Shown here: positions 15,678-56,804 of the stretch, piece after piece
Layout: each line of letters starts with the position of its first letter
Position numbering within the stretch: the stretch's first letter is position 1
Sequence record: MN445183.1
DNA length: 64,000 nucleotides
Direction: 5' to 3' (one strand)
Made by a program: the position numbers and the translations under genes
Notes under the pieces: model-generated
What the model saw: the letters and a program-made list of their open reading frames with translations, nothing else
Told to the model about the DNA's origin: nothing
Databases searched by the model: none

Positions 15678-16625
15678 ATGCTTGAGTTAATGTTAGCAGG
15701 AAACAATGTCACCATAGTACCTGGATCTGGGCCGGGTAATAAAAAGCTTTTAGCAGGTGACAAAACAGACGGTTGGTTTGGGATGATTGACTCCGGTGAA
15801 ATGCCGATACCGCAATTAATGCTGAACGAAGCCGGTGGCGGGATAGCGTCACTACCCCAGCAGGCAAGTGTACCATTGCGCTGGATGAAAGCGGTTATTA
15901 ACGGTAAATACATCTTTGTTGCCAATACACCGTTTAACACATACCCTTTACTGGACCTCTATAACCGCGGACAAGTCTTCGGTACCGATGATAACGGGAT
16001 TAGCCCGCCGTCCAACCGTTATAACGATCAGAACCAGTTACAGATCGTTACGCATATCGACAAAGCCGGTAAAGTGTGGGCGTTTAAATTAAGGCTGCTG
16101 AGTCACAGCTCTAACGACAAACCTACTTCTACGTCCGCATCAGCTGCGGAACTTGCCGGAGCCGAATCGTTTAAGTTATACTCGCACGTCATCAGCGGCA
16201 TGATTGCCGATGATGGTAAACGCTGGGATAACCTGGTTAACGGTGTTGATTACTACGCTGCGTGGTCAACAAGTCGAACAGTCTATGGAACACAGTTCTT
16301 GTGCCGTGTACAAAACAGCCCCCGTGCTGGCGGCAACTGGTGGGGCAACACCACGTCCTATAACTGGTTCCCGGTATTGGAGGTTATCGATCCTGATGTT
16401 GACATTATTCCTCCAGTCAACATTGCTTTTGAAACCATTAGTTTGTCCGGCACAGGCACTACAGCAACAAGTGATGCAATCACAATGATTCCTAGCGAAC
16501 TCAATACGCTACCACAAATCGAAGTCGCGCCACATGTCAAAGCGTCGGATGACAATGCGATCGCTATGACGCCGTCCGAGCTTGCGAAACTTGACCACGC
16601 AGAACGCCCGGCGTTCATGAAATAA
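15678..16625 (+). CDS. Putative virion structural protein, cassette 1 gene A (MLE-tag plus paralogous domain)
   Basis: MLELMLAG start; GPGNKKLLAG..GWFG..W.KAVINGK.IF..WFPVLEV domain shared with six other ORFs in the window. Confidence 0.7.
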   Translation: MLELMLAGNNVTIVPGSGPGNKKLLAGDKTDGWFGMIDSGEMPIPQLMLNEAGGGIASLPQQASVPLRWMKAVINGKYIFVANTPFNTYPLLDLYNRGQVFGTDDNGISPPSNRYNDQNQLQIVTHIDKAGKVWAFKLRLLSHSSNDKPTSTSASAAELAGAESFKLYSHVISGMIADDGKRWDNLVNGVDYYAAWSTSRTVYGTQFLCRVQNSPRAGGNWWGNTTSYNWFPVLEVIDPDVDIIPPVNIAFETISLSGTGTTATSDAITMIPSELNTLPQIEVAPHVKASDDNAIAMTPSELAKLDHAERPAFMK

Positions 16626-16635
16626 CAGGTGACAC

Positions 16636-17472
16636 ATGTACATACATTTGAAATGGGCCAATAAGAACACGCAGGATGTTTCTGTCAACATCTATCGTTC
16701 ATTGACCGCTATCGATCGAAACAATCCGGGTACACCGTTGGTCACACTAGCGGGTGATGTGGAAGAATACATTGACCGTGCAGTAACACAGGGCACAACG
16801 TATAACTACGTCATCCAGTTTGTCAAAGGAGCAAACAAAGTCACCTCGCGTAACTATACGTTCACGGCAAACTATCAACGTGGACCTGGGAACAATGTTC
16901 CAGTGTTGGGTAATGATGACTATGGTTTTATGTGGTACGGTCAGTTTGGAATGGCTAACGATATTCTGGCTAAATTGGGTATTTACCGTGAAACCAGTAA
17001 CCCTACTGATAACCCATCGATAATGGCCTACAAATGGAGCTTGAAAGGGGAGGTGTACTATTTGTTGTACATTGGCGGTAACTTGGTCAACACAGCCAAT
17101 GCGTTAGCATTTAGTAAAAGCACTGAACCGAAACCTGTTACGTTTGACGGGATCGACTACCTTGCTTCAATGCCGGATTACAAAGGCGATGGCTGGGTGC
17201 AGACCGACTACAGTACCAAACCACCAGTCGGTGATAGAAGTATGGCTACTCGGTTAACGTTACCGTATCTTTACTACATCAGTAATCGCGGTATACCGGG
17301 TGAGGAGCTGGGATGCATCGGTTCTGCCGCTCTGTCTAACGCTCACGTGAGTGTAACTGACCCAACGTCAGAGCGTTTTACATGCTGGCGTGCGGATATC
17401 GACAGTATCGTCCACTACACAACACTTAGCTCTAGTTACGTCTATCCCGTCATTCTTAAACTTGTGGAGTAA
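16636..17472 (+). CDS. Putative virion structural protein, cassette 1 gene B (FN3-like plus paralogous domain)
   Basis: LKWAN..NIYR..Y.D..V..GTTYNYVI FN3-like pattern; paralog of 19470..20306 (both 278 aa). Confidence 0.7.
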   Translation: MYIHLKWANKNTQDVSVNIYRSLTAIDRNNPGTPLVTLAGDVEEYIDRAVTQGTTYNYVIQFVKGANKVTSRNYTFTANYQRGPGNNVPVLGNDDYGFMWYGQFGMANDILAKLGIYRETSNPTDNPSIMAYKWSLKGEVYYLLYIGGNLVNTANALAFSKSTEPKPVTFDGIDYLASMPDYKGDGWVQTDYSTKPPVGDRSMATRLTLPYLYYISNRGIPGEELGCIGSAALSNAHVSVTDPTSERFTCWRADIDSIVHYTTLSSSYVYPVILKLVE

Positions 17473-17474
17473 TC

Positions 17475-18413
17475 ATGTCAATTACTTTAAACTGGAGTAA
17501 CCGCGGTCAGGCAGTTACCAGCGTGAAGATTTACCGTAATTTACATCGTAGCGAGACTCCGACGTTACTCACCACGTTGAACACCCCTGATGAGACATAC
17601 ACCGACACTACCGCAGAAATGAATAAACTTTATTTCTACAGAGTGGCGCTGGTCATCGGTGATGAAGAGGTTCCAGGGGCGGTGGTACCAATGATGTCTG
17701 TGAACGATACCGGCCCTGGACCTAAGGCGTTGGTCGCCGGCACCATGGAGTATGGGTATTTTGGCACGCTGACACCCGATGAGTTTTTGACAACCTCGGA
17801 TGTTCAGCGTGTCGGGACCCCTAACGGGTTCACCAGTTATTCGTCAGGCACTATCGCACTCTGGCGTAAATTTGCCAACATGGGGAGAATCATTTATATT
17901 CCCAACGCGCCGGTATGGCAGGTATCCACAGCCACTACGGGGATCAACGCACTACAGTTACTATACAGCAGTGGTTATCTGTATGGCGGTGGTGGTACGG
18001 ACAGAGCTCCAGGACTTACCGGATCCCGGGCGCAGGACAAGAAAGCAACGTTAGGTGCCTATGAATTCTACGTCAGGGTGCCAAATGCTGAGTATGACCG
18101 TGACCCAACAACGCAGTATACAACTGGCACGTCATTCAACACTTATGGTGGTGAGGTGTCCATGGTTGCATCGGCCAATAACTACGGACCGATTCAGTCT
18201 TATATTTCTGCCGGGGCTGGTTGGCCACGCATTGCACCACCAACTACGTTAACCGCCATTGGACACGGTTATCTCTTGACATCGACGATGGCTAATAACT
18301 TACAAGTCACCTTCTTTGCCAACCAGCAGCAGTCTGTTGGCACCAGTGTTGCCGGGACAACCGCCAACGTCATATTTGGCTTCTTGACCATTTTGGAATT
18401 GATTCTTGGTTAA
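17475..18413 (+). CDS. Putative virion structural protein, cassette 1 gene C (FN3-like plus paralogous domain)
   Basis: MSITLNWSN..KIYR..YTD..YFYRV; GPGPKALVAGTMEYGYFG; paralog of 20308..21267. Confidence 0.7.
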   Translation: MSITLNWSNRGQAVTSVKIYRNLHRSETPTLLTTLNTPDETYTDTTAEMNKLYFYRVALVIGDEEVPGAVVPMMSVNDTGPGPKALVAGTMEYGYFGTLTPDEFLTTSDVQRVGTPNGFTSYSSGTIALWRKFANMGRIIYIPNAPVWQVSTATTGINALQLLYSSGYLYGGGGTDRAPGLTGSRAQDKKATLGAYEFYVRVPNAEYDRDPTTQYTTGTSFNTYGGEVSMVASANNYGPIQSYISAGAGWPRIAPPTTLTAIGHGYLLTSTMANNLQVTFFANQQQSVGTSVAGTTANVIFGFLTILELILG

Positions 18414-18447
18414 TATAAGGCAGGGCTTCGGCCCTGCTTTTATACCG
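18414..18447 (+). terminator. Hairpin terminator between the duplicated cassettes
   Basis: GCAGGGC-TTCG-GCCCTGC followed by TTTTATACCG. Confidence 0.8.
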
Positions 18448-18487
18448 CTTGATGATATGTATCCACTGATTATAAAAGGTTCGCGCT

Positions 18488-19459
18488 ATGTTAGAGATAC
18501 TTATTTTTGGAGGTGGCGACGGCGATAATTATCTGCCAAACTCAGGACCTGGTAACAAACGACTGATAAAAGGATCAAAGGACGAAGGGTGGTTGGGGTT
18601 AGTTGATGTGCGGTTAATGCCTTCTATATTCCAGGCCGCTGATAGAATCGGATTAAACGTTACACCGTTCACCGGCAGTAACACGGCAGCACCGCGTTGG
18701 TTTAAAGCGATCATTGATGGGAAAGCAATCTTCTTTCCAAACGGTCCATGGGTTAACCCACTGAACTTCACTGACATCTATTACAAGGGCGGTGTGTACG
18801 GGATTGACGGGGTCGGACCTAACGGAACACCGCCGAGTAACGTGGGAAGTGGCGTAAACCAGCTGCAATATTTAGACTGGATTGATCCTGAAGGTCGAGC
18901 GTGGTTGTTTAAGATACGTTTAATCAAAGGCAACAATCCGGTTTACGTCACCAACCAAAGTTCGGTAACCACAACATCAGCCGCCGATGCTGAGTTTTGG
19001 CGATTGGTGGGTCGCGTGGTGGCTAACAGCACGATTGCGGCCAGTGACCGTTGGGATAACCTTGTACTCAATGTTGACTACAAGGATTCTCGCCTTCACG
19101 ACCAAACCATCACCTCCGGTTACTACCATGCCGTATCTGACTTCTTGAAACCCGCCACAGGGTCCTGGAGTCAGTCGGGCTTCAGCAACAGCTATGATTG
19201 GCGACCGGTACTTGAAGTGGTTGATCCTGCAACCACGTTTGTTCCCCCTATCGCACCTCGTGGTGTTACGCCTCGCGGAATAACCCTAAACCCATCCATA
19301 TCGGGCTCGGCGGGGTTCCTGGTTGCTGGCGATGTTTTATTAACAAATCAGAAAACAATACCGTTAGCGACACGCACGAGCAGTAATGCCTTTACCGTGG
19401 CTGGTAATGTATCTACTATAGTGATGCCGGTTGCGCCGATTAACCCAACGCTAAGCTGA
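18488..19459 (+). CDS. Putative virion structural protein, cassette 2 gene A
   Basis: MLEILIFGG start; paralog of 15678..16625 (GPGNKRL..GWLG..RWFKAIIDGK..RWDNLV..WRPVLEV). Confidence 0.7.
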   Translation: MLEILIFGGGDGDNYLPNSGPGNKRLIKGSKDEGWLGLVDVRLMPSIFQAADRIGLNVTPFTGSNTAAPRWFKAIIDGKAIFFPNGPWVNPLNFTDIYYKGGVYGIDGVGPNGTPPSNVGSGVNQLQYLDWIDPEGRAWLFKIRLIKGNNPVYVTNQSSVTTTSAADAEFWRLVGRVVANSTIAASDRWDNLVLNVDYKDSRLHDQTITSGYYHAVSDFLKPATGSWSQSGFSNSYDWRPVLEVVDPATTFVPPIAPRGVTPRGITLNPSISGSAGFLVAGDVLLTNQKTIPLATRTSSNAFTVAGNVSTIVMPVAPINPTLS

Positions 19460-19469
19460 GGTAAGTAAC

Positions 19470-20306
19470 GTGTACATCGATTTAAAATGGGCTAATGTTA
19501 ATACAGGCCCAATAACGACTAACATTTATCGCGGAACGTCGCCTTTGGATAAGACCAACCTTGGCACCCCGGTCGCCGTCTTAACCAATAAAGAAGTCAC
19601 CTGGCGAGACCTTAATGTCACCGCCGGCACAACGTACTATTACGTTATCGAGTTTGACGACGGTAATGGCAATAAAGTTTCAACACGGGTGTTTACCATT
19701 GTGGCGAACTACATCCGTGGGCACGGTAACGCGTCCGTTATGCTGGGTGACCAGAACTACGGGTTTATGGATTACGTTGCCCCTGGTCGACTGCTTGGCG
19801 TATTGACCTCAGCGGGGTTCTCACCCACGGGTATCTCGGATGTCAACTTTGGCCCTGCGGTAAAGTTCTCGTACAACAACAAGGTGTACTTTAGCATTTT
19901 GCAACAGGCCAACCAGGTTGGGTCAACGTTAAGCGTGATGACACCGTTGCTCAACAACGACGCCGGTATACCGGTTACCATTGATGGATTTAACTACATC
20001 CTGCGGATGGCAAAGGTATTGGGGCCCAGCTGGGATGGCACATCTAAACCTGCCAGCCAAGCAGATTTGGATGAATATTACATCAAGTTCATTTTACCAC
20101 AGTTTAACTATTTGCCAAATTGGGAAGGTGAATCGCTGGGTAAGGTTAATAACCTGTCAGCAACCAACACCGTGTTCGGACGGGAAGTGGTGTCCAACAC
20201 CATTGCAAGCCGGGTTGGTCGTAATGGCGCCATTGTCTGGAACGCCTCGACTCTGGCATTAACGGCTTCCCAGTACATCCCTTTCATTTTAGAATTGGTG
20301 GAATGA
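19470..20306 (+). CDS. Putative virion structural protein, cassette 2 gene B
   Basis: GTG start after GAGGT SD; MYIDLKWAN FN3-like; paralog of 16636..17472. Confidence 0.7.
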   Translation: MYIDLKWANVNTGPITTNIYRGTSPLDKTNLGTPVAVLTNKEVTWRDLNVTAGTTYYYVIEFDDGNGNKVSTRVFTIVANYIRGHGNASVMLGDQNYGFMDYVAPGRLLGVLTSAGFSPTGISDVNFGPAVKFSYNNKVYFSILQQANQVGSTLSVMTPLLNNDAGIPVTIDGFNYILRMAKVLGPSWDGTSKPASQADLDEYYIKFILPQFNYLPNWEGESLGKVNNLSATNTVFGREVVSNTIASRVGRNGAIVWNASTLALTASQYIPFILELVE

Positions 20307-20307
20307 C

Positions 20308-21267
20308 ATGTCAATTACATTGAATTGGACAAATAAAAACCCCAACACCACGAACTTTAAAGTGTATCGTGGGACTTCGAAAACTGCGTTGTCTTTATTA
20401 ACCACGCTTGCCAGTTCCGCCACGACGTATACGGATAACGCCGCCGTAAACAACACGCTGTACTACTACCAGGTTAACGTGGTATTGGGTGGATTGGATG
20501 AAATCCCTGGCGCTATTGTCCCGCACGCCGCAGTCACCGATACAGGACCCGGACCAACAACTCTCATTGCCGGCAGCATGGAGTGGGGGTTCTTCGGCAC
20601 GATTCCCGTCGCTGAGTTTATCAGTGATTCGGCATACAAGGCGTTGTCTGCGGTCGGTAACGCATACTCGACGGCGATCACTAGCTGGTACAAGTTTGCT
20701 TACAAAGGCAAGATACTGTTTGTGGCCAGCGACCCGGCCAGAACCCAAACCGTTGCACCGTATATGTTTGCCAAAGCGATATATAACGAAGGCGCGTACC
20801 TTGGTACAGGAGATAGTTCGTTACCGCACACGTTGGTGGGTGCGTCGGCTGTACCACAAACGAAACGGGCGACGTTTGGCTCGTACGAGTTCATTGTGCG
20901 TGCAATGAAAGCCAACGAAACCACACCAGCTAATGCGAACGGTATCACCAACAGCTATAACCCGCCAGTCTCACGCGAACCCATTTTCTCTGAAGCAAAC
21001 CTGATTGCTTCCGGGAGCAGTAACTGGGCCGTTGTGGCGCCATACCTGGCGGCTGGACTGATGCCACCTAAGTTGATTGGGTCTGGTGGATTGATCGGCC
21101 CGTATCAGAACAGCTACTTCATCACTCAACACTTCAACAACGCATCGTCGTATTACGCGTTAATGATGGTTAATAACAATACGTCCACTACGAGTGTTTC
21201 CACGTATGCTTATCAGACATCCATAGCGTGCGTGTTCCTACCGATACTGGAATTAGTTACCCCGTAA
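20308..21267 (+). CDS. Putative virion structural protein, cassette 2 gene C
   Basis: MSITLNWTN FN3-like; GPGPTTLIAGSMEWGFFG; paralog of 17475..18413. Confidence 0.7.
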   Translation: MSITLNWTNKNPNTTNFKVYRGTSKTALSLLTTLASSATTYTDNAAVNNTLYYYQVNVVLGGLDEIPGAIVPHAAVTDTGPGPTTLIAGSMEWGFFGTIPVAEFISDSAYKALSAVGNAYSTAITSWYKFAYKGKILFVASDPARTQTVAPYMFAKAIYNEGAYLGTGDSSLPHTLVGASAVPQTKRATFGSYEFIVRAMKANETTPANANGITNSYNPPVSREPIFSEANLIASGSSNWAVVAPYLAAGLMPPKLIGSGGLIGPYQNSYFITQHFNNASSYYALMMVNNNTSTTSVSTYAYQTSIACVFLPILELVTP

Positions 21268-21314
21268 TATGTAAAATCGTACATATTCGATAGGTATATA
21301 TAACCACACTTATT

Positions 21315-21340
21315 GGCTAGGGTTCATCCCTGGCCTTTAT
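21315..21340 (+). terminator. Hairpin terminator after cassette 2
   Basis: GGCTAGGG/CCCTGGCC stem (one G-U pair) followed by TTT. Confidence 0.55.
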
Positions 21341-21358: not shown

Positions 21359-22204
21359 ATGTTTGAGATGATAGTAGCAACGGCAGGTGCCGGCGGTGTC
21401 AGGATCGAGATTACAGCGGACGTTGAAGGGACAGCATATCCTGGCCAGCCCATTAACTACACCTTTAAAATATCCGGGGTGCCAGTAGGTAAGAAGGTCT
21501 ACTGGTCGATGTATGAAGACTACACGGCAAAGACTATCGGTGCTGATAGACTGTACGATGGTGTAACGTCCGGCGTGCTAACCATCACGGGTTTGCCCAT
21601 TACCGTGGCTAAGCGCGTAATGGGGAAAACGTTGCAAGGGCGCAAGCTGGTTATGCGTGCTGCATTAACCGCAGCAGAAGCAGATAACCCTGATACCGCG
21701 CTTGCAACGACCCCTGAGATCGTTATTGGTAAATCACCAACCGGCAGTGCAACGGCTACCACTACTGTGCCTACGAACGTCTATGCAATGACCGTGTCGT
21801 TGTCAGGGGCTGGCGGCGGTGGCGCAGGCGGAGCACCATCAGGCTCGTTCAGGTACTACACCGGTGGTAAAGGCGGTAATGGAGTAATTTACAGCGGCGT
21901 GGTATATGTAAAACCAGGCACCACGGTATCGCTCTCCAAAGGCACCGGCGGTGCAGGTCGCCCACCTGGTCAGGCCGGCTATTCTGGTGGCGGAACTTCA
22001 CTGTCTGGACTCGTCCTGCCCACTACTTCTGTGTCAGCGCAAGGCGGCGGTGGGGGCGGGATTGGTGATAACCAGACTGGCGTAAGCGGTCGCGTGGGTT
22101 CGCCAAACGGCAGTGGAGCAGCAGGTGGGGCGGGTGGGGCTCGTGACCAGGGCACTGGCGGCACCGGTTCACCGGGGTACGGCACAATAACTTGGGGTCT
22201 TTAA
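21359..22204 (+). CDS. Putative fibre or structural protein, Ig-like N-region plus glycine-rich C-domain
   Basis: MFEMIVA start; GAGGGGAGG..GGKGGNG glycine-rich repeats. Confidence 0.7.
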   Translation: MFEMIVATAGAGGVRIEITADVEGTAYPGQPINYTFKISGVPVGKKVYWSMYEDYTAKTIGADRLYDGVTSGVLTITGLPITVAKRVMGKTLQGRKLVMRAALTAAEADNPDTALATTPEIVIGKSPTGSATATTTVPTNVYAMTVSLSGAGGGGAGGAPSGSFRYYTGGKGGNGVIYSGVVYVKPGTTVSLSKGTGGAGRPPGQAGYSGGGTSLSGLVLPTTSVSAQGGGGGGIGDNQTGVSGRVGSPNGSGAAGGAGGARDQGTGGTGSPGYGTITWGL

Positions 22205-22209: not shown

Positions 22210-22530
22210 ATGATTGATGACATTATTACCGGCCACATTTACAGTTCACCGTCAGGTAAACCGTTCATTGTGGTCGCAAAAGCAGCACATGGCCAGGACT
22301 GTTCATTAGGGATGGTCTTGTATCAAAACTTAGAAGCTACCGACGACTACCCACCCGGTAAGCTCTGGGTGGAGCCTGAGTCGTTGTTTATGCAGCAATT
22401 TAAAACATTCGAATCAGGAGTTTATTATGACTACAACAATGCACGAACATCTACTGACGCGGGGCTACGATCTGGCCCGTTATCCTACTTCTTGGGTTAC
22501 GGACACCCAGCTGACGGTTCCGTTGTTTGA
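22210..22530 (+). CDS. DUF1653-like protein (start revised to ATG 22210)
   Basis: GHIY..G..FIVVAKA.H..MVLYQNL..LWVEP..FM pattern. Confidence 0.65.
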   Translation: MIDDIITGHIYSSPSGKPFIVVAKAAHGQDCSLGMVLYQNLEATDDYPPGKLWVEPESLFMQQFKTFESGVYYDYNNARTSTDAGLRSGPLSYFLGYGHPADGSVV

Positions 22531-22958
22531 CTTTGGCGGTAAGCTGAGGGGATATCAGACGTACACACCCGGCGCGCCGAAGACAGCCAAGAACCCACAT
22601 GATGCGAAGTATTTTACGCGGATGATGGGTGCTGGTCAGGCGGCTGTCTGGGGTACGGAACTGGAGTTGGAAATTACAGGCTCAACCGCACAGAACAACC
22701 GTATTTCTAACGGAGTCGGTGTTCAAAGCGTGTGCGTTGCACAACGCTGGTTTTAACGCCTGGTCTGTTCTGGGTAGCGACGTTTCTAAACAACTCAGAC
22801 AGCAGCTCTTATTACTGCCGTATCATTTTGTCTGTGCAGGCGATGATGATTCGGCGGGCTTGAAATTTTCCCGTACGTTTCGCGACGGCTTTGTTTCGCG
22901 TGACTTAGATGAACTATCTGTTGAAGAGGTTCGCATGTTAGCTAATCAGTACCTGTAG
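22427..22958 (+). pseudogene. Small Toprim-domain (primase-like) gene split by a +1 frameshift near 22670
   Basis: Frame 1 gives PLFDFGGKLRGYQTY.P..KYFT..VWG; the +1 frame gives VFLTESVFKA..AWSVLG..GDDDSAG..DLDE (Toprim acidic motifs). Confidence 0.7.
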
Positions 22959-22974: not shown

Positions 22975-23577
22975 ATGATAGAATCACTTTTGTACAGTGG
23001 TGCTCGCCCGATTGCCACTGGACAATTAACGTACAGCATGTCAGGTAACTTTATATTCACCGTTCCCAATAACGTCACAGAGTTGTGTGTCTACGCACAG
23101 GCAGGTGGCGGGGGCGGAGGATACGGTAACACGTCTTATCGTGGGCTTGCCGGTACGCCTGGTTCAATCGGTAAAAACGGCTACCTTAATGCTATTCCCG
23201 TTACTCCTGGAGAAACACTAACTGTTACCATCGGCAGCGGCGGTAACACGCCCGGCCCGGGCTCGGCAACAACCCTATCACGTGGCGGTACCGTTCTATT
23301 GACGGTTGCCGGAGGTGCTGCGGGTAGTAATGCCACGAGCACGGGGTTAAGTGAGCGCAACCCAGGATATCCTGGTCCAGCAGCACCCGCCGTGCCGGGG
23401 GCAACAGGTTTAGGTACCGGTAACTTGGCACCTGGCAGCGGTGGTAATGGTGGTAAAGGTTACGGATTCGGTGGTGGTTATACCGCATCAAAAGGCATTG
23501 CGGGTGCGATGCGTATTATTTGGGGTAAGAACCGTGCGTTCCCCAGCACGAACGTTGCGGATATGAAGGTTGTTTAA
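22975..23577 (+). CDS. Glycine-rich putative fibre or structural protein
   Basis: MIESLLYSG start; FTVP..V..LCV.AQAGGGGGG; C-terminal RIIWGKNRAFPSTN shared with 55950..56804. Confidence 0.75.
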   Translation: MIESLLYSGARPIATGQLTYSMSGNFIFTVPNNVTELCVYAQAGGGGGGYGNTSYRGLAGTPGSIGKNGYLNAIPVTPGETLTVTIGSGGNTPGPGSATTLSRGGTVLLTVAGGAAGSNATSTGLSERNPGYPGPAAPAVPGATGLGTGNLAPGSGGNGGKGYGFGGGYTASKGIAGAMRIIWGKNRAFPSTNVADMKVV

Positions 23578-23593: not shown

Positions 23594-24184
23594 ATGGCAT
23601 CACTCTATTTTCATTTTGCTACCATGAATGCAGGTAAATCATCGGCGTTGATTCAGGCAGCATACAACTACAAAGAACGCGGTATGGATGTGGTGATTTT
23701 CAAACCACGTATCGATAACCGTGATGGCAATGATGTTGAGGAAGTAACCAGCCGCATTGGGTTGAAGGCGCAAGCAAGGCTGATCTCATCGGATGAAGAT
23801 CTGTTCGAGAAAGTTTGTGTGTCCTTACGCGAACAGCAAATTCACTGCGTGTTCGTTGACGAAGCTCAATTTTTAACACCGGAGCAAGTTCGTCAATTGG
23901 CAAAGGTGGTTGATATTATCAAACTCCCGGTCATGACCTATGGTTTGCGTTCTGATTTCCAGGGGAATCTTTTCCCGGGTTCAGCCGCGTTGTTTGCAAC
24001 TGCACAAAAGTTAAGACCTATGGTTACCATTTGCCATTGCGGTTCACGCGCTACCCACGTACTGCGCTACAATGAAGCGGGTGAAGTGGTGAAAGAAGGC
24101 CCGCAAGTGGAAATCGGTGGTAACGATAAATACGTCGCTGTCTGCCGCAAACACCATGCTGGACCAATGGGTTATTACGACTAA
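23594..24184 (+). CDS. tdk: Thymidine kinase (type II)
   Basis: FATMNAGKS P-loop, SRIG, FVDEAQFL, YGLRSDF, C.CG Zn site, IGGNDKYVAVCRKH. Confidence 0.95.
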   Translation: MASLYFHFATMNAGKSSALIQAAYNYKERGMDVVIFKPRIDNRDGNDVEEVTSRIGLKAQARLISSDEDLFEKVCVSLREQQIHCVFVDEAQFLTPEQVRQLAKVVDIIKLPVMTYGLRSDFQGNLFPGSAALFATAQKLRPMVTICHCGSRATHVLRYNEAGEVVKEGPQVEIGGNDKYVAVCRKHHAGPMGYYD

Positions 24185-24186
24185 GC

Positions 24187-24225
24187 CGGCATAAAGGCCA
24201 GGGCAGTGCCCTGGCTCTTATGACG
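24187..24225. terminator. Bidirectional hairpin with CGGCATAA/TTATG flanks
   Basis: GCCAGGGC/GCCCTGGC stem between convergent genes. Confidence 0.85.
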
Positions 24226-24229: not shown

Positions 24230-25339
24230 TTACCCATCCACGTAGCGTATAATGATGGCACCATCGTCGCCTTTGGTGCCGTTTGCACGGTATCCACCCT
24301 TACCGCCTTTGTTCCCCATGCCGTTACCGCCGTTGGCGCCGTTACCACCCTGACTCATTCCAGACGCCGCGCCACCGTTCCCCGGTAACGCCGTTGCTAC
24401 GCTGGTACCGTCGACTGTGAGTTGCGAAGCAATGCCAACACTACCTGGATCAATACGACTGTTAACGTTTTGACCCCCTGCGCCACCCGTACCGCCAACA
24501 AACCCCAGTGCTGTAGTGGACGACATGGTTAAGGCATACGGAATAAGTCCGCCATTACCGCCGTTCCCACCAGGATACTTGTAACTCAGTGATTGGTTAC
24601 CGCCAGCACCACCGCCACCGCCTGGACCTTTAATAAAGCAAACGGCATAGGTTGATTTTGGTGGGGTGTAGGTTCTGATGGCAGATGTCATCATCGCGGT
24701 AATAACAGGATAGATTTGACGTTTTCTAATGGACAGCTTTGATATGGACCCTGTGAAACGATAATCTCCACGGAACAAACCACCGAGACTTAATGAACAT
24801 GGATCACGATAAAAACCTGCACCGAAAACATCTGTTACGCTTCCCATCTTCTGGCCACCGCGATAAACATCTAAGCGGGCAGTAGGCTTTTCACACACCC
24901 TGACAACTTTATAAGTCTGGGTGCCGGTTGCGCGTGACCATGTGGTATCATACCAAGAGCCGGTAGTGGTAGTTACATCATTGACAAAACGCTCCTGCCC
25001 AGAAGCGTTGTATTGGAAACCAAGTGAGGTGGTATTGTCTTCTATGCGACCCAATTCAAAGACGGCTACCGAATTACCCGCACCTGCGGTAACAACATAT
25101 TCTATTTCAACTTCACAGCCGACAAAGTCGACAGAACCGAAGTTTGACAGCACGGCATTACCTGCACCGGTAAACGACGCCTGGCCGTTGGCAACGGTTA
25201 CGCCAGTGCCAAGCGAGAATACGCCGCCAGTCACTTTGTCTTTGATTATCCCGTCTGTGGAAAAATCGATGTCTAATATTTGTTCCCATTCTCCGGCTGA
25301 CCCGGTAGGGGGTTTAACTGCTAACATCATCTCTAACAT
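24230..25339 (-). CDS. Putative fibre or adhesin: LamG/concanavalin-like domain plus glycine-rich domain (start revised to ATG 25339)
   Basis: MLEMMLAVK start with GAGGG SD; LSLGG..FTGSISKLSI LamG-like end; GGGGGAGG repeats. Confidence 0.7.
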   Translation of the reverse strand: MLEMMLAVKPPTGSAGEWEQILDIDFSTDGIIKDKVTGGVFSLGTGVTVANGQASFTGAGNAVLSNFGSVDFVGCEVEIEYVVTAGAGNSVAVFELGRIEDNTTSLGFQYNASGQERFVNDVTTTTGSWYDTTWSRATGTQTYKVVRVCEKPTARLDVYRGGQKMGSVTDVFGAGFYRDPCSLSLGGLFRGDYRFTGSISKLSIRKRQIYPVITAMMTSAIRTYTPPKSTYAVCFIKGPGGGGGAGGNQSLSYKYPGGNGGNGGLIPYALTMSSTTALGFVGGTGGAGGQNVNSRIDPGSVGIASQLTVDGTSVATALPGNGGAASGMSQGGNGANGGNGMGNKGGKGGYRANGTKGDDGAIIIRYVDG

Positions 25340-25346: not shown

Positions 25347-25994
25347 TCACTGCGCAGTAGGAACAAAGAATCGTATTTTACCTATCGCGTCATTCCACGG
25401 GTTTGATGTTGTGCTGTCACTCCAGCATCCAATAGCAATAGGGAGCGCTAATCCATTGAATGAAACGTTGGACGTTGTCGCGGCAACGATGCTACTGCGT
25501 TGATACATTGTGAGTTTAGACCCTTCCCTTACAATCCTAATAATCACCTTGAGAGCCGTAGGTGCTGAGGTACCTGACAATATGGACCGCCAGTTATTCG
25601 TCGCATCTTTATACCAAAATCTAAATAAGCGACTACCCGCAAGTTCAAGGTACCAGCCACCGCCGCCAGTCATACTTGCAGCCTGCGACATCACTACTCG
25701 ACCTTGAGACGCAGTAGACAGCTTAAGTTCTACTGAGAGCTCCCAAGACGGTAATGTCAAATCGATTGGATGCAATGCAGGAGAAGCGCTCTGAATAAAC
25801 CCAATTGATGATGCTTTTGGGTAGTAGCATGAACCAAGGTCTGGGTCTGTGGTGATGTTACCGGCCGAACCACAAGTTAATCTTATCTTACTCACTTGGT
25901 CATATACGATGCTGGCGGCGCTGCCTTCACGCCAGTCTATCAAAAGTAACCCTTCAGCTGCCTGACCGTGGCCGCCCATCATCATCTCTAACAT
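25347..25994 (-). CDS. Putative fibre or adhesin with LamG-like domain
   Basis: MLEMMMGG start; IVREGSKLTMY..IAIG..W..AIGKIRF LamG-like pattern. Confidence 0.7.
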   Translation of the reverse strand: MLEMMMGGHGQAAEGLLLIDWREGSAASIVYDQVSKIRLTCGSAGNITTDPDLGSCYYPKASSIGFIQSASPALHPIDLTLPSWELSVELKLSTASQGRVVMSQAASMTGGGGWYLELAGSRLFRFWYKDATNNWRSILSGTSAPTALKVIIRIVREGSKLTMYQRSSIVAATTSNVSFNGLALPIAIGCWSDSTTSNPWNDAIGKIRFFVPTAQ

Positions 25995-35141: not shown

Positions 35142-35699
35142 ATGCTTGAATCGATTATACGCACAGCAGTGCACCGCGCTTCTTTAGTTGAAAATGCTGA
35201 AGAATATTTGCTTCGTCTTCGCAACTATGTCGAGTCTGATATTCGCCATCAGATTAAACAGTACGGTGGCAAGCAGAGTTTCGATATCAATACGCGTTTC
35301 CATCTGGGCTACAACGACATTGACGGATTCTATCAAGAAATCTGCACCAACGTTTTATGCACGGGCACCACACGAGAAATGGCAGAGCGCGTTCGCATAA
35401 CCATTGGGGGCAACGATCTCCTTGGTCCACTGCGCGGCGTTTTCCATCACGCTTCTTTGAAAGCTAAGATGGCAAGTGACTACTACTTCTCAAACGGTGA
35501 GATCATCACCACCAAAACCAATCTGCAAAATGAGCTGCGTCCGTTCTTCGGCAACCACAAAGCTATTGTCGTGCTCAATCATTCGCTCACGGGTAACTGT
35601 GCGGTTGACGTTGAGCTGATTCACTGCTCTTTGAAAAATCTTGCTGGCGTCTTCAGTACGTTGGAAAATAGCTTGCCGGACGATGCGGTAAGTGTGTGA
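35142..35699 (+). CDS. Hypothetical protein
   Basis: 185 aa, AGGA SD. Confidence 0.75.
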   Translation: MLESIIRTAVHRASLVENAEEYLLRLRNYVESDIRHQIKQYGGKQSFDINTRFHLGYNDIDGFYQEICTNVLCTGTTREMAERVRITIGGNDLLGPLRGVFHHASLKAKMASDYYFSNGEIITTKTNLQNELRPFFGNHKAIVVLNHSLTGNCAVDVELIHCSLKNLAGVFSTLENSLPDDAVSV

Positions 35700-37436: not shown

Positions 37437-37481
37437 TAGACCAGACCCTTCTCCTGGCGGGAGGGGTCTGGTTTTATGCCG
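37431..37481 (+). terminator. Hairpin with GCATAA/TTTTATGCCG flanks
   Basis: ACCAGACCC../..GGGTCTGGT stem. Confidence 0.8.
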
Positions 37482-37528
37482 ATTTGTTGTTTATTTTTTG
37501 TTTATTTTGAGTTGCAGATTTTTTCAGA

Positions 37529-40707: not shown

Positions 40708-41172
40708 ATGCATGATCTGTTGGTGGTTATTACAACCATCGCCGGACTGGGTGGGGTGTTATTCGTAACCAGTTCGTTGTTTGATGCATTGGAACTGCGT
40801 GCAGCAGAAAAACGTGTGGCGCTGTTGATGGGATTTGTTGAACGACGAGATCACGAATTCGATCACATTAGTGTTGCGCTGATTAATGCTGAACTGCAAC
40901 ACCGAATGTCCATGACGGGTGAGTTCTATATTACTGTAGCACACAGACTACTATTAAATCACATTTCCCGTGTCATTTATATTCTGGCAAAAGCCGGTGT
41001 GCGTAATCAGCTTGACATGCTGATGCTTGTCGCCGAACAAATCAACCGAGAAGGTCACTGCACCGCTCGAGTTAATTTCACCACCAACAACCGACTTGAG
41101 CTAGTCACACAGATGCCGGAAAGCGAACAGTTGATTTATATCAAGTTTCATTCTGTCAATACCTTATTCTGA
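40708..41172 (+). CDS. Hypothetical protein with N-terminal TM
   Basis: GGAGGT SD before ATG 40708; 154 aa. Confidence 0.7.
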   Translation: MHDLLVVITTIAGLGGVLFVTSSLFDALELRAAEKRVALLMGFVERRDHEFDHISVALINAELQHRMSMTGEFYITVAHRLLLNHISRVIYILAKAGVRNQLDMLMLVAEQINREGHCTARVNFTTNNRLELVTQMPESEQLIYIKFHSVNTLF

Positions 41173-41173
41173 T

Positions 41174-41214
41174 CGGCATAAAGGCAGGGGTTAAACCCCT
41201 GCCTGTTTTATGAC
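41174..41214. terminator. Bidirectional hairpin with CGGCATAA/TTTTATG flanks
   Basis: AGGCAGGGG/CCCCTGCCT stem between convergent genes. Confidence 0.85.
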
Positions 41215-45248: not shown

Positions 45249-45599
45249 GTGAATACAGCGACGGCGTTACCGATTCGTTCTGACGTGGACATCAGCGCGT
45301 TGTTTGACCAGGATCGTGATTTAGAGGGACCGATAAAACGTCGGCTCCTTCTGACCTACATCTGCAAGCAACGCAGTCCTGAGGCTACCCCGGACGAACT
45401 CAATCGTAAGTATCACATTACCCGTAATGCAAAAGACGTAGCACGATGTCTCACTTATCTGGGTGGTCTTGACCACAAACTGCGACCAGCATTCAGCGGG
45501 GTTGATTTTACACGACCTTTTGATATCCTGGCACATACACCAGATTGGATTAAGTACGGGTCAGTGATTGACATGTACCAAGACATTCGAAAACTGTAA
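45249..45599 (+). CDS. Hypothetical protein
   Basis: 116 aa, GTG start after TAAGGAGG SD. Confidence 0.75.
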   Translation: MNTATALPIRSDVDISALFDQDRDLEGPIKRRLLLTYICKQRSPEATPDELNRKYHITRNAKDVARCLTYLGGLDHKLRPAFSGVDFTRPFDILAHTPDWIKYGSVIDMYQDIRKL

Positions 45600-45600
45600 T

Positions 45601-45665
45601 CGGCATAAGAGGCGCTTCTTCCCCGCAAAGGGAAGAAGCCCTCTGTATCTTATGCTCTTTTTTTT
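45601..45665. terminator. Bidirectional hairpin with CGGCATAA/TTATGC flanks
   Basis: GCTTCTTCCC/GGGAAGAAGC stem, loop shared with the 9553 hairpin, T-run. Confidence 0.85.
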
Positions 45666-52747: not shown

Positions 52748-52769
52748 ACTTCCTCCAAGAAATTTCAGG

Positions 52770-52788
52770 ACTATATTACTAAAGTGAA
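52770..52788 (+). promoter_or_regulatory. Phage early-promoter-like motif
   Basis: TTTCAGG-ACTATATTACTAAAGTGAA contains an exact TATATTAC; divergent junction. Confidence 0.7.
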
Positions 52789-52813
52789 TGTGGAACTGAA
52801 TTAAGGACTTCCC

Positions 52814-53338: not shown

Positions 53339-53352
53339 ATGGAGTATACTCG

Positions 53353-53817
53353 TTGGAAATCAAGAGACCAAAAGAGGAGCTGGAAGAACTCCTTACTGAC
53401 CCCAGTAAGAAGAGCTATTCTACTCCACATCATCTCTTGCGGATTTGGCGTGAATTCCTATCAGCTGAGCAGGTGACGCAGGCTAAGTGGACGCGTTTAG
53501 TCATGGAGCACATCAATAAGCTGAAACGAATAAAGCCAATGAGCGCGCAAGATATCGGCACAGCACGAGGCAATCTGGTAAAGCTGTTTATCGCGAAACC
53601 CAGCATGTCTTTCGGAGCTCTGTTACGTGGCTTGGAGTTCTTAGGATACTCCTCGGTACGGATACAGATAACTGGCATTCGACCGGATGGGACGGAGGTT
53701 ACTAACTCCGCAACTATTCCGATAGCCAAACGTCGAATGTTCGGTGAGGCCGCGACACCAACCCCGGAGGAGTCAACGACGTCGGATTCTTCTGAGGATG
53801 TGAAAGAAGTAAAATGA
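53353..53817 (+). CDS. Hypothetical protein
   Basis: 154 aa, TTG start after GGAG. Confidence 0.65.
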   Translation: MEIKRPKEELEELLTDPSKKSYSTPHHLLRIWREFLSAEQVTQAKWTRLVMEHINKLKRIKPMSAQDIGTARGNLVKLFIAKPSMSFGALLRGLEFLGYSSVRIQITGIRPDGTEVTNSATIPIAKRRMFGEAATPTPEESTTSDSSEDVKEVK

Positions 53818-53824
53818 TATAGCC

Positions 53825-53859
53825 GGTGGGGAGACGTCCCCACCACTATCTTTTTTTTT
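53825..53859 (+). terminator. Rho-independent terminator
   Basis: GGTGGGGA/TCCCCACC stem and a 9-T run. Confidence 0.8.
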
Positions 53860-53875
53860 GGTTTCCGGAGGCATC

Positions 53876-54943
53876 ATGGCTGTCGATATTAGCAACTCGA
53901 TCAGTAGCGCGATGAAACAAGCGGGTTCGTTAAGCACCAACGCGGTGTCGAAAGCAACGTCGATGTTTACTGGCGGCCTGCAGGAGAACCTGGCACTTGT
54001 CGACTCCGCGGCAAAGAGCGGAGTTGCCAGTCTTAACGCGTTTAAAGATTCACAGATCAATGCCCTGAGCGGATTCATTAAAAAGGTCTCCGGCGGTGCG
54101 TTGTCGATCAGTGAGCTGACCAGCTACATTGATATTCGTAATGGTTTCAAGATTGACTACATGGGTCTGGGTAAACGTTTAGGTGAAGCTGCGGGTTTCC
54201 CTATTGACTCCGTCCTGAACATGACCAATGATATCAAACAACAGGCGATGGATCTGTTGGATGCATATCAGAACAAAAACTACTTAGGTATCCTCAACGG
54301 CCTGGGTATTGAAATCGGTACAATGGACGGTTCGTATGAACTGACCAGTATGTTAACCGATCTGCTGAGTCGCTATTCAGCAGAAGACAGTGACTTCAGT
54401 TCGTATGTCGACCGTACGGCTCAGGTGGCGTTCTTAAACGTCATGTTGCAATATACCGTCTCAGCGGGCCTGTGGGAAGGTATTGACACTTTGTTAGCCC
54501 AATACACCGTGAAGGAGGATGGGCTCAGCGCGTTGGCTAACAGCGCGTCCTATGCGGTAAATAACGGTGATGTCTACACCTTGCGTGCCATTGTCGACCG
54601 TGTAGGGGTTGCGCGTGTTAAAGCATTGAACCCTACGGTGGTTGCTTCTTTGTTGCAGAACTTCCGCTTCAAAGCCAACACCACCAGCGATCAGTATCCT
54701 GATTATCGTACCCGTCTGATTGGTTTACTTAATCTGTTAGAACCTGGCTGGGACACAAAGAAGTTTGGTTCTATTACCGCTAAGAAGTTGGAACCGTTCG
54801 TAACCTGTTCAACTGATGTGGTAACCCTGTTGCAGTACGACCCTCGATATCGCGAACAAGTGTTGGTGGCGAAGTTATACCCGAAAGCAGATCTCATGGA
54901 TCTGTTAAAAGCCAACTACACGAATTTGGCGATTGTGCAATAA
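53876..54943 (+). CDS. Probable virion structural protein (start revised to ATG 53876)
   Basis: GGAGG SD; 355 aa; core-region context. Confidence 0.65.
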   Translation: MAVDISNSISSAMKQAGSLSTNAVSKATSMFTGGLQENLALVDSAAKSGVASLNAFKDSQINALSGFIKKVSGGALSISELTSYIDIRNGFKIDYMGLGKRLGEAAGFPIDSVLNMTNDIKQQAMDLLDAYQNKNYLGILNGLGIEIGTMDGSYELTSMLTDLLSRYSAEDSDFSSYVDRTAQVAFLNVMLQYTVSAGLWEGIDTLLAQYTVKEDGLSALANSASYAVNNGDVYTLRAIVDRVGVARVKALNPTVVASLLQNFRFKANTTSDQYPDYRTRLIGLLNLLEPGWDTKKFGSITAKKLEPFVTCSTDVVTLLQYDPRYREQVLVAKLYPKADLMDLLKANYTNLAIVQ

Positions 54944-54946
54944 CCA

Positions 54947-54983
54947 GCATAAAAGGCAGGGGCTGATCCCCTGCCCTTATGCC
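54947..54983. terminator. Bidirectional hairpin with GCATAA/CTTATGCC flanks
   Basis: GGCAGGGG/CCCCTGCC stem between convergent genes. Confidence 0.85.
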
Positions 54984-54986
54984 ATC

Positions 54987-55691
54987 TTAAGACACGAGCT
55001 CTAATACCGGCCGCCAGCCATACTGTGACGAGGTGGTTGATTTACCCGTCTCGCCGCTGGAGTTGGTGGCGTCATTGCTATCGCCACGGTAGAGGTACCC
55101 AATAGTTCCAGACGCTATGAATAATTCCATACATATAGTGCTGCGACCATTCTCGTTAACCCCCATCCCCAGATCTGCATACGTGAAGTTATCCCATTTT
55201 ACCCCACCAGTTACCTGCTGACCAGAAATTGCAGGTGACAACACACTGTAAATCAAACGATTCCATTCCGAATTATCTGTCTTTACAGGCACTGCTTGCG
55301 AATCCCCATTAAGACCTTTGATCGACCTCAGCAGATAGTCATACTTCCCAATGGTTATTGACTTGCCTGTTAATCTGTTATTGCTAGTCGCTGTCGTGTT
55401 CACCCCATCCCAGCTTACGTAATACTTAAATGGTTTTTTAGCAACGTAGATAATTTTACCGTCAATTAAAAACTTTAACCAACCGGCATTGTAGTTAGCG
55501 ATGATATTGGTCCCGCTAAACGCCGGTAAGGCGGCGATTAGATCCCCGCCAGTGATTAGATCACTCGCAGGCACCAAGCCGTAATAACCCGCCAATTGCC
55601 CAGAACCTTTGCTGTACGAGTAAAGTAATGTGTCGCCACCCGGCACGCCGCCAGATGCTTTCTTAACACCGCCCACCAATATTTCAAACAT
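54987..55691 (-). CDS. Putative virion structural protein, MxE-tag plus paralogous domain (start revised to ATG 55691)
   Basis: MFEILVGG after GGGGAG SD; GYYGLVP..GWLKF.IDGKIIYVAKKP..WRPVLELV. Confidence 0.75.
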   Translation of the reverse strand: MFEILVGGVKKASGGVPGGDTLLYSYSKGSGQLAGYYGLVPASDLITGGDLIAALPAFSGTNIIANYNAGWLKFLIDGKIIYVAKKPFKYYVSWDGVNTTATSNNRLTGKSITIGKYDYLLRSIKGLNGDSQAVPVKTDNSEWNRLIYSVLSPAISGQQVTGGVKWDNFTYADLGMGVNENGRSTICMELFIASGTIGYLYRGDSNDATNSSGETGKSTTSSQYGWRPVLELVS

Positions 55692-55715
55692 ACTGACTCC
55701 CCTGATGGCGACAAA

Positions 55716-55744
55716 ATAATAACGGAGACCTGCTCCGTTATTAT
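55716..55744 (-). terminator. Hairpin terminator
   Basis: 12-bp ATAATAACGGAG/CTCCGTTATTAT stem, with TTT downstream on the minus strand. Confidence 0.75.
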
Positions 55745-55752
55745 CCCAACCA

Positions 55753-55938
55753 TTATCTGTGATACTCTTGTTCAACGGCTTTCACCGCATTGTCCAGCAC
55801 GTTGCTCAAACGGTCATGTACCTGTTTAGCCATCTTCTTTTGTTTAATCAACTCAGAAGACAGCCCAGCTACCAGCAACAGCAGCAGTGCAATAAGAACA
55901 GCCGCGCCTGCGATTGTTTCAGAATAGTACTCTTGCAT
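55753..55938 (-). CDS. Small membrane protein
   Basis: 61 aa, GAGGT SD, one TM plus an amphipathic tail. Confidence 0.7.
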   Translation of the reverse strand: MQEYYSETIAGAAVLIALLLLLVAGLSSELIKQKKMAKQVHDRLSNVLDNAVKAVEQEYHR

Positions 55939-55949
55939 GAACACCTCTT

Positions 55950-56804
55950 TTATTGATCGGCAGTGAGCGTGTTAGGGAATGCACGACCATTACCCCAGAT
56001 GATACGAAGTCCTGCTTGACCACCCACAGCGTAGCCTGGTCTAACTGTACCGTGAGAAGCCGAACCAGCACCGTACGCACCAGCGGTGACCCCAGTATCG
56101 GATCGTCCACCAGAGCCTGGATACCCGGAACCGAAGTTACCGGTGTTAGAGCCACCGCCGGTGCCTCCCGCACCGTTCCCGCCTTGACCATTTAACCCAA
56201 CAGAACCCCCGGAACTCCCGTAATATTGGCCGTTGTATAAATAGCCTGCGCCCCCGCCACCTCCGCCTCCTGTACCTGCCAAGCCCTTCCCTGTGAAGTT
56301 GCTGGCATTACCGCCGTTACCACTGTATCCACCAGCACCGCCACCGCCACCGCCGTATTGACCTACTGCGTTATACCCCACCCCACCGTTCCCGCCACCG
56401 CAGTTGGGACTAGTAAGTGGAGTCTCATTGGCATCGGTGTATCCGCCGCCGCCCGCAAGAAGCAGAATCGTGCCTTGTCGTGATAACGATGCGGGTCGAC
56501 CGTACACCGCCCCACTTCCTCCGAAGTTACCAGGTCGTCCTACGGTTACAGATAGTGTCTCGCCCGGTGTTACAGGGATCTGATTACGCCAACGGAGATT
56601 ACCGCCATTGCCGCCCCGGGAAGCCCCACTAGATGAAGAGGTAGGCGACCCTCCTCCAGAACCCACGGCTACGACCGAAATGAAATACACTCCAGCCGGC
56701 ACCACCCAATCAGTTGACACATCGGCCCCGGTATTATTGGTGAATAACTTTTGTCCTACCGGGGACTTCACTGCCGGAGCGCCACCTAAAATGATCTCTA
56801 ACAT
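55950..56804 (-). CDS. Glycine-rich putative fibre or structural protein
   Basis: MLEIILGG start; WVVPAGVYFISVVAVGSGGG; C-terminal RIIWGNGRAFPNT. Confidence 0.75.
   Translation of the reverse strand: MLEIILGGAPAVKSPVGQKLFTNNTGADVSTDWVVPAGVYFISVVAVGSGGGSPTSSSSGASRGGNGGNLRWRNQIPVTPGETLSVTVGRPGNFGGSGAVYGRPASLSRQGTILLLAGGGGYTDANETPLTSPNCGGGNGGVGYNAVGQYGGGGGGAGGYSGNGGNASNFTGKGLAGTGGGGGGGAGYLYNGQYYGSSGGSVGLNGQGGNGAGGTGGGSNTGNFGSGYPGSGGRSDTGVTAGAYGAGSASHGTVRPGYAVGGQAGLRIIWGNGRAFPNTLTADQ

Follow-up and report, generated by a model that had tools for sequence, protein, structure and literature searches.

A conserved N-terminal hexapeptide on adhesin-like proteins of Salmonella phage vB_SalM_SA002, a candidate docking tag of chimallivirus virions

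Short conserved N-terminal peptides on interchangeable receptor-binding proteins (RBPs) are an established principle in phages, with examples of 7, 11 and 29 residues in K1-5/SP6, KP32 and KP34 (PMC6872550, PMC13352976). The conserved N-terminal hepta- or undecapeptides of the K1-5, K1E and SP6 tailspikes bind the adapter gp37 (Leiman 2007, as summarised in PMC6872550). The conserved peptides of the secondary RBP in KP32 (29 amino acids) and KP34 (MALxxLV) dock on a T4gp10-like branching domain (PMC6872550; PMC13352976). In KP32, the predicted contacts of RBP2 with the RBP1 branching domain are Leu2, Asp3, Phe5 and Asn6, deletion of the peptide removes RBP2 from the virion, and the peptide can be transferred to foreign cargo (PMC13352976). 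In phiKZ, the shared N-terminal domains of the gp131 paralogues form a hetero-hexameric fibre base (PMC13250141). Here we analysed a stretch of 64,000 nucleotides (hereafter the window; nucleotides 62001-126000 of MN445183.1) from the 288,012 bp genome of Salmonella phage vB_SalM_SA002 (hereafter SA002), in which a short motif, M-[LIF]-E-x-[LM]-[LM] (the tag), heads adhesin-like proteins of several kinds. We think it fairly probable that the tag is a minimal N-terminal docking (anchor) peptide, by which modular adhesins would bind to the chimallivirus virion.

SA002, a jumbo myovirus, encodes a multisubunit RNA polymerase in split genes and has both a tail and a vertex protein of the phiKZ type; on these grounds we regard it as a phiKZ-like chimallivirus. 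A reading of the window made from its letters alone (the sequence-only reading) had listed eight protein starts that share the tag. All eight coincide with annotated coding sequence starts (gp96, gp99, gp102, gp106, gp108, gp109, gp151 and gp153), and a purine-rich Shine-Dalgarno-like stretch precedes each of them. We scanned the whole SA002 record piece by piece (L001-L008) with the pattern M-[LIFM]-E-x-[LIVMF]-[LIVMF], for which the phage's own amino-acid composition gives an expectation of 0.0009 per Met. The 85 annotated proteins of the window included 8 tagged starts vs 0.08 expected (P = 2e-14), and 15 strict matches vs 0.3 expected were found in the whole genome (P = 9e-21). The genome-wide scan, which the sequence-only reading had proposed, showed that the set reaches beyond the window, to 15-16 tagged genes in total: those outside the window are gp164, gp284, gp293, gp294, gp313, gp328 and gp332, and the 67-amino-acid gp194 probably belongs to the set as well.

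The small gp194 (record positions 167123-167326; L004 41123-41326; outside the window) has the N-terminus MQELMLLNGSPG, behind which a repeat of ~17 residues (...TKxMTxNLLYA...) occurs three times; it may represent a remnant, or else a tagged protein whose cargo is a minimal repeat. Two other candidates, gp121 (window 35142-35699, + strand; MLESIIRT) and gp22, matched the loose pattern only and did not have the Gly/Ser-rich continuation. We rejected both, which are probably chance matches. The gp121 sequence behind the start looks charged and helical.

We sorted the tagged proteins by BLAST, Pfam and PHROGs and found at least five cargo types behind the tag in SA002: family A, which is phiKZ gp83-like and chimallivirus-specific (gp96, gp99, gp151, gp284, gp293 and gp313), a glycine-rich domain (PF21722; gp102, gp106, gp153 and gp332), a LamG-like domain (gp109), a Kelch propeller (gp164) and an RCC1-like propeller (gp294 and gp328). 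The earlier statement that the cargo differs downstream of the tag therefore stands, and the peptide is cargo-independent and strictly N-terminal. The description of the eight window proteins as unrelated went too far: gp96, gp99 and gp151 are family A paralogues and gp102, gp106 and gp153 share the glycine-rich domain, with gp109 being LamG-like and gp108 assigned to no class.

The gathering score of PF21722 (Gly_rich_2) is 24.3; gp106 passed it with 34.1 bits, gp102 stayed just below (23.6 bits), and gp153 scored 18.8 bits, although its fold nonetheless matches fibre proteins that carry PF21722. In particular, a Foldseek search with gp153 recovered the fibre of cyanophage Pam3 and chains from the tail tip of mycobacteriophage Bxb1 (E ~1e-5, probability 1.0, with low TM-scores). 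Neither single-sequence, profile nor fold comparison gave a match to gp151 or family A in the PDB; in BFVD, all proteins with the gp151 fold were "virion structural proteins" from chimalliviruses or jumbo phages related to them. We modelled gp151 and gp153 as monomers with AlphaFold2. For gp151 (29 homologues) the cargo had a predicted TM-score (pTM) of 0.86 and residues 1-13 had a predicted local distance difference test (pLDDT) <50; for gp153 (48 homologues) the pTM was 0.89, the mean pLDDT of residues 1-10 was 57 and no secondary structure was predicted before residue 17. Since both models leave the N-terminus unfolded, the tag appears as an extension outside two unrelated folds. Judged by sequence profiles and predicted models, the cargos are adhesin or fibre-tip folds.

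The consensus obtained from 104 non-redundant tagged proteins was M1, L/I/F2, E3 (103/104), any residue at 4, L/M5 and L/M6; positions 2, 3, 5 and 6 of this profile are partly set by the search pattern, but among the residues that it allows the preferences are nonetheless strong. The hexapeptide is followed by Gly/Ser/Thr and then by a Lys- and Pro-rich stretch. At least 15 tagged proteins occur in SA002 and about 100 in its relatives. Most of the 55 family A homologues that we recovered from public metagenomes start with the tag motif, and the remaining ones have either no comparable start or the tail-fibre domain Mtd_N (PF18454). When 29 tagged homologues (29-46% identical to gp151) were aligned, Met1 was invariant and Glu3 was conserved in at least 90% of the sequences, with the 10-35 columns behind the tag differing in length and sequence. 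We also collected 76 IMG/VR loci around family A genes, on contigs mostly >200 kb, including those of PhiPA3, Noxifer and many uncultured phages: the motif was present at 3.4% of the first Met codons of long open reading frames (ORFs) vs 0.4% of later Mets. This census beyond SA002 and phage SPN3US used loci selected by family A and is thus biased toward that cargo. An exact DNA pattern for MLEMMLGG gave a single match in IMG/VR; it was too narrow and was superseded by the homologue-based loci.

The tag was also kept with the other cargos. It heads Kelch-propeller proteins in other phages, and LamG-like or propeller proteins without family A. The closest ~12 homologues of the glycine-rich cargo are all tagged, including Erwinia phage Deimos-Minion gp135, and the tag was absent from the distant non-jumbo homologues of that cargo. 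A metagenomic gp102 homologue (P0063) retains the tag, as does the sole full-length homologue of gp108 (P0181, 51% identical). The gp109 homologues have a precomputed PF13385 assignment, an invariant tag and a variable linker; in LamG homologues that are 80-90% identical, the tag is invariant and residues 8-15 differ. The family A protein of phiKZ, gp83, has the N-terminus MFELLLSS, and it was the only tagged protein in the 100 kb of phiKZ that we examined. In 201phi2-1, gp456 starts with MIDLML, an MID-type tag. An in-frame MIDLLMTTGG lies 13 codons downstream of the annotated start of gp452 from the same phage (L086 1584-2336, - strand), and this internal Met is probably the true start. The cross-phage scan, also proposed in the sequence-only reading, has thus placed the tag in phiKZ gp83, PhiPA3, Noxifer, 201phi2-1, Deimos-Minion and metagenomes. 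From these alignments we conclude that the tag is apparently under purifying selection across distant phages while the linker drifts.

An indication of what the tag replaces came from SPN3US (JN641803), where we examined the gp138-155 cluster, whose members are DUF7941 proteins (PF25613). SA002 has three triplets in which a tagged family A protein is accompanied by two family A proteins with an FN3-like N-terminus (gp96-98, gp99-101 and gp313-311, the last outside the window). In reciprocal BLAST these triplets matched SPN3US gp145-153 member by member, where the order is DUF7941 N-module with family A, FN3-like with family A, and again FN3-like with family A. In SPN3US gp145, gp148 and gp151 the first 150 DUF7941 residues are fused to family A, and two FN3-like family A proteins follow each of them. 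The best matches of SA002 gp97 were SPN3US gp146, gp149 and gp152, and those of gp98 were SPN3US gp150, gp153 and gp147. Since residues 13-302 of SA002 gp96 align with residues 155-433 of SPN3US gp145, the tag occupies the place of the DUF7941 N-module. The four untagged members gp97, gp98, gp100 and gp101 share a second N-terminal module (MYIxLKWAN or MSITLNWxN; FN3-like) in front of family-A-related bodies. An obvious idea is that the members of a triplet may form a heterotrimer.

By local profiles, SPN3US has 17 DUF7941 N-modules, 9 family A cargos and no convincing tags, and SA002 has 4 DUF7941 N-modules, 10 family A cargos and 15-16 tags. PF25613 itself matched SA002 gp8, gp9 and gp11 and SPN3US gp141, gp145 and gp160; none of the eight tagged proteins of the window matched it. 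A similar replacement was seen next to gp154, the homologue of the phiKZ baseplate spacer gp182, which lies immediately upstream of gp153 and gp151 in transcription order. The slot downstream of the spacer gene holds the DUF7941 protein gp237 in SPN3US and the tagged gp153 and gp151 in SA002. In a relative from IMG/VR (L013, 287 kb; gp154 71% identical), two tagged family A genes occupy this slot in place of the glycine-rich, holin-like and family A genes of SA002: the cargo changes and the tag stays. Family A therefore occurs behind four alternative N-terminal modules, i.e. the tag, the DUF7941 N-module, the FN3-like module and, in ordinary phages, Mtd_N, and such interchange is as expected of an attachment position.

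Relatives of the tagged proteins have been found in virions. The 201phi2-1 record describes gp452 and gp456 as "identified as virion protein by mass spectrometry", and phiKZ gp83 is annotated as a virion structural protein in its record. The DUF7941 profile matched one solved chain, PHIKZ127 (PDB 9XQD, E 4e-21), i.e. phiKZ gp127, which is modelled at the outer baseplate periphery. DUF7941 proteins assemble into head-to-tail filaments at the baseplate periphery (Goslar preprint, 10.64898/2026.04.21.720040), and in SPN3US, where they are known as the 20-member paralog family B, they were detected in virions (PMC5694885).

On this evidence the following mechanism can be proposed. The adhesin-like modules, each with its own gene, would be translated with the tag at their extreme N-terminus, and Met1 would probably be retained because residue 2 is bulky: methionine aminopeptidase leaves Met1 in place when the second residue is bulky. 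With its hydrophobic face and Glu3, the peptide, unstructured on its own, would fit into an acceptor site that the modules share within the virion's network of peripheral fibres. As the tag is strictly N-terminal and Glu3 is invariant, we suspect a pocket in which the free terminus, the acidic group and three or four hydrophobic side chains would be recognised. Behind the tag, the Gly/Ser/Pro/Lys linker would let the cargo move freely, so that one type of socket could display many binding modules and the cargo could be exchanged in evolution with the socket unchanged. The socket most likely belongs to the DUF7941 (paralog family B) network on the outer baseplate, as suggested by the tag standing where related phages carry the DUF7941 N-module on the same cargo. 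If this is true, the phage may change its adhesin repertoire by swapping cargo genes behind a constant tag.

Several observations weigh against a docking peptide of this kind. When ten large structural proteins of SA002 were scanned with Pfam, none gave a match to a T4gp10-like branching domain, although no profile-profile or fold search of all candidates was made. The literature search returned neither a paper on SA002 nor virion proteomics of it, and a family A chain is absent from all the solved chimallivirus virion structures. The globular DUF7941 N-domain is described as the acceptor of the neighbour's linker, so the tag is not simply a miniature of the DUF7941 N-module or a like-for-like swap with it; nor, by eye in one alignment (A2), did the tag clearly resemble the linker or C-terminal motif of DUF7941. 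The evidence on location conflicts between the baseplate periphery and the head or neck: members of SPN3US paralog family B stayed with the particles of a tailless mutant and were therefore assigned to the head by the authors (PMC5694885), and phiKZ gp83 is noted as "structural head protein" in the phiKZ RefSeq record (NC_004629.1). The claim of a docking or sorting tag made in the sequence-only reading is thus upheld as regards a cargo-independent, N-terminal and conserved peptide outside the fold, adhesin-like cargos, virion-associated relatives and a syntenic swap, and it falls short as regards binding to an acceptor, which Pfam did not find in the ten proteins scanned, and the location.

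A bolder version of the same idea, which we consider rather unlikely as a whole, is that the hexapeptide would be a universal plug for the DUF7941 filament "cloud" at the baseplate (or at the head or neck), and thus a six-residue natural display system, the tag perhaps being the surviving first helix of a deleted DUF7941 N-domain. Descent of the tag from that first helix (consensus Glu/Asp/Gln, Leu, Leu/Val, x, x, hydrophobic, Ile, Asn) is a possibility.

Among the other explanations, a self-assembly or chaperone signal survives best, though we consider it unlikely. The N-terminal peptides of several copies, or of all three triplet members, would pack into a small hydrophobic cap or strand bundle, or an assembly chaperone would bind them, and oligomerisation or folding of the fibre would be driven in this way instead of docking to another virion component. 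Such a role suits a short, hydrophobic peptide that is unstructured in the monomer models and has a flexible linker behind it; fibre proteins are usually trimeric, and the fibre bases of phiKZ are bundled N-terminal parts of paralogues (PMC13250141). Yet only one member of each triplet is tagged, the Kelch, RCC1 and LamG cargos are not typical trimers, and the tag stands in for the DUF7941 N-module, which mediates contacts between proteins. The phiKZ fibre paralogues gp131-135 themselves have no tag. We also considered that the tag could be a helix of the six-helix bundle of the phiKZ fibre base (PMC13250141), and rejected this on the same absence from gp131-135 and because only gp83 is tagged in the 100 kb of phiKZ.

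The next possibility concerns DNA and not protein: the genes may have inherited a 5' cassette in which promoter, ribosome-binding site (RBS) and first codons were copied together, the codons being kept for expression (e.g. AT-rich starts). The identity at the DNA level that the sequence-only reading had noticed is real, as gp99, gp108, gp109 and gp153 have ATGTTAGAGAT in common, the first codons are AT-rich, and four tagged genes outside the window (gp164, gp294, gp328 and gp332) share an extended motif, ending in TTATAG, ~30 nucleotides before the ATG. Nevertheless, the residues stay constant while their codons vary: Glu3 is encoded by GAG in 9 genes and by GAA in 7, and Leu2 by TTA, TTG or CTT, so selection acts on the peptide and not on the DNA. 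Glu3 is moreover present in 103/104 proteins, which come from phages of Pseudomonas, Erwinia and Salmonella and from metagenomic phages and have cargos with only 25-45% identity, and the linker directly behind the tag is not conserved. The core of the upstream motif, TTATG[AC]CG[AG][TC], is an element of intergenic regions in general, the 288-kb genome having 34 copies vs ~4 expected. A copied cassette is therefore very unlikely as the reason for the tag. The presence of tagged genes on both strands together with the shared 11-mer also brought up invertible, shufflon-type cassettes; we rejected these because each gene has its own RBS and start, the DNA identity covers few codons and the codons vary.

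The intergenic motif, which is probably a terminator or promoter element, was located in the window at 15623-15632, 18440-18449 and 37474-37483 (+ strand) and at 13182-13191, 41172-41181 and 45599-45608 (- strand), and also at 24194 and 24218. A G+C-rich stretch usually precedes it and some copies are palindromic (e.g. record positions 164455-164468).

A capsid-targeting sequence, by which the tag would send its cargo into or onto the prohead as internal or decorating head proteins, is likewise very improbable. It draws on SPN3US, where family B proteins, which contain the family A cargo as well, were recovered from tailless particles and two members exceed 300 copies per capsid (PMC5694885), and on the head note of phiKZ gp83. 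The high-copy SPN3US members are, however, DUF7941 proteins, and the only modelled DUF7941 chain sits at the periphery of the baseplate. By type, the cargos are lectins, propellers and fibre tips, with homologues in solved tail fibres or fused to tail-fibre N-termini. For the prohead protease of these phages, the motif requires Ala, Ser or Gly at the second position ahead of Glu (PMC5694885); the tag, with Met1 at that position, does not have it. The head notes of the phiKZ record (NC_004629.1; L089) are also given to gp128, a baseplate wedge, and to gp145/gp146 (gp146 being a fibre), which the 2026 atlas placed in the baseplate or tail. Because a baseplate wedge and a fibre are labelled as head, we gave these notes little weight and do not consider them fit for locating proteins. 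External fibres on the head or neck are possible and are covered by a docking peptide as proposed above.

Finally, an export or membrane signal, for which only the five hydrophobic residues at the N-terminus speak, is next to negligible, since that stretch includes Glu3, has no positive n-region, is followed by Gly/Ser/Pro/Lys and heads proteins whose tagged relatives are virion proteins. The earlier remark that the tag is too short and polar to be a signal peptide is correct in its outcome, as the Sec and lipoprotein features (a positive n-region and a core of ~7-15 residues) are lacking, but the tag is hydrophobic with one Glu rather than polar.

Table 1. Tagged genes, triplet partners and associated features in the window (positions are those of the window).
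Feature	Position	Strand	Description
gp96	15678..16625	+	MLELMLAG (first 8 codons), short linker, family A; first member of triplet 1
gp97	16636..17472	+	Untagged, second member of triplet 1; FN3-like N-terminus MYIHLKW, family-A-related body
gp98	17475..18413	+	Untagged, third member of triplet 1; FN3-like N-terminus MSITLNW, family A cargo
Intergenic motif, promoter- or terminator-like	18440..18460	+	~30 nucleotides upstream of gp99; related copy at 15623-15632 upstream of gp96
gp99	18488..19459	+	Tag MLEILIFGG, family A; first member of triplet 2
gp100	19470..20306	+	Untagged, second member of triplet 2
gp101	20308..21267	+	Untagged, third member of triplet 2
gp102	21359..22204	+	Tag MFEMIVATAG, N-terminal region of ~130 amino acids, glycine-rich domain
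gp106	22975..23577	+	Tag MIESLLYSG, glycine-rich domain; minor tail protein PHROGs
gp108	24230..25339	-	Tag MLEMMLAV, cargo of 360 amino acids, no fold class assigned
gp109	25347..25994	-	Tag MLEMMMGG, LamG-like cargo (PF13385, weak)
gp151	54987..55691	-	Tag MFEILVGG, family A cargo
gp153	55950..56804	-	Tag MLEIILGG, glycine-rich fibre-tip cargo
gp154	56816..58816	-	Baseplate spacer, phiKZ gp182 homologue (9xqs_K PHIKZ182, E 1.5e-89)

Between gp102 and gp106 there are small overlapping ORFs in different frames (gp103 at 22210-22530; gp104 and gp105 at 22427-22958). Two of them match successive parts of the DNA-primase family phrog_849, so that the primase-like frame is in at least two pieces, and separate small PHROG families exist for each piece, for which reason the split may be conserved in relatives rather than be a recent decay. 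A thymidine kinase gene, gp107 (23594-24184, + strand), lies amid the tagged cluster, between gp106 and the divergent gp108/gp109, and its position fits a mosaic region with high gene turnover. The slot next to the spacer gene also contains gp152 (55753-55938, - strand), a holin-like ORF of 61 amino acids (phrog_608, weak PF09682) between gp153 and gp151 that is absent from the slot in the L013 relative. The spacer gp154 also matched chains under the names "tail tube initiator complex protein gp203" (11lx_H) and, unexpectedly, "Capsid decorator gp77" (36za_rp), the latter of which may be mislabelled. Beside it lies gp155, a giant protein with a lysozyme domain (gp154 and gp155 together span 56816-63957, - strand).

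The idea of such a tag is only partly new. The docking-peptide principle was known from K1-5/SP6, KP32 and KP34, and our literature search found no earlier description of this motif, of its occurrence in Chimalliviridae, of the number of clients per genome or of the alternation with DUF7941. In both structural atlases of chimalliviruses from 2026 (phiKZ and Goslar), the peripheral fibres and many of the abundant virion proteins have no assignment, and a six-residue address on ~15 adhesin-like proteins per genome would offer a searchable handle on this peripheral apparatus and on attachment. The principle would then also reach beyond two-spike podoviruses to jumbo myoviruses that form a nucleus and have far more clients. 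For annotation, a start of the form M-[LIF]-E-x-[LM]-[LM] may be used as a rule that flags candidate host-recognition proteins in chimalliviruses.

We finally compared the tag with the known systems, starting with the least similar. The capsid targeting sequence of T4 is a short N-terminal peptide on polymorphic, swappable internal proteins, which directs them inside the prohead and is removed by the prohead protease; the SA002 tag has no protease motif and its cargos are external adhesin folds. The phiKZ gp131 paralogues have differing C-terminal binding domains on a shared N-terminal attachment part, as the tagged proteins do, but that part is a folded domain with a helix and not a short peptide, and gp131-135 have no tag. 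The DUF7941 proteins of SPN3US (PMC5694885; 10.64898/2026.04.21.720040) come from the same phage family and have the family A cargo, the triplets and the genomic slots in common with the tagged proteins. Both the tag and the DUF7941 N-module appear to be N-terminal attachment modules on host-recognition domains, the latter being, however, a globular domain of ~150 residues that polymerises head to tail and the former only 6-8 residues long.

Like the tag, the KP32 peptide is hydrophobic, lies at the N-terminus and has an acidic third residue. For KP32 and KP34 the function has been shown experimentally, whereas for the SA002 tag we infer it; the motif and the phage family differ, and there are far more clients per genome in SA002. 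K1-5 and SP6, as far as they are covered in PMC6872550, carry a peptide of 7-11 residues at the extreme N-terminus of unrelated, exchangeable receptor-binding proteins, which is the arrangement seen with the tag. According to the same account, their peptides (MAKLTKP and MIQRLGSSLVK) differ from M-[LIF]-E-x-[LM]-[LM], these phages are podoviruses with two cargos per phage vs ~15 in SA002, and their adapter has a T4gp10-like domain, of which Pfam detected none in the ten SA002 proteins. Set against MAKLTKP, MIQRLGSSLVK and MALxxLV, the tag has only its hydrophobic character in common, plus the acidic position 3 with KP32. What it shares with the K1-5/SP6, KP32 and KP34 systems as a type is a short N-terminal peptide on unrelated domains, with a cargo of the receptor-binding or fibre type.

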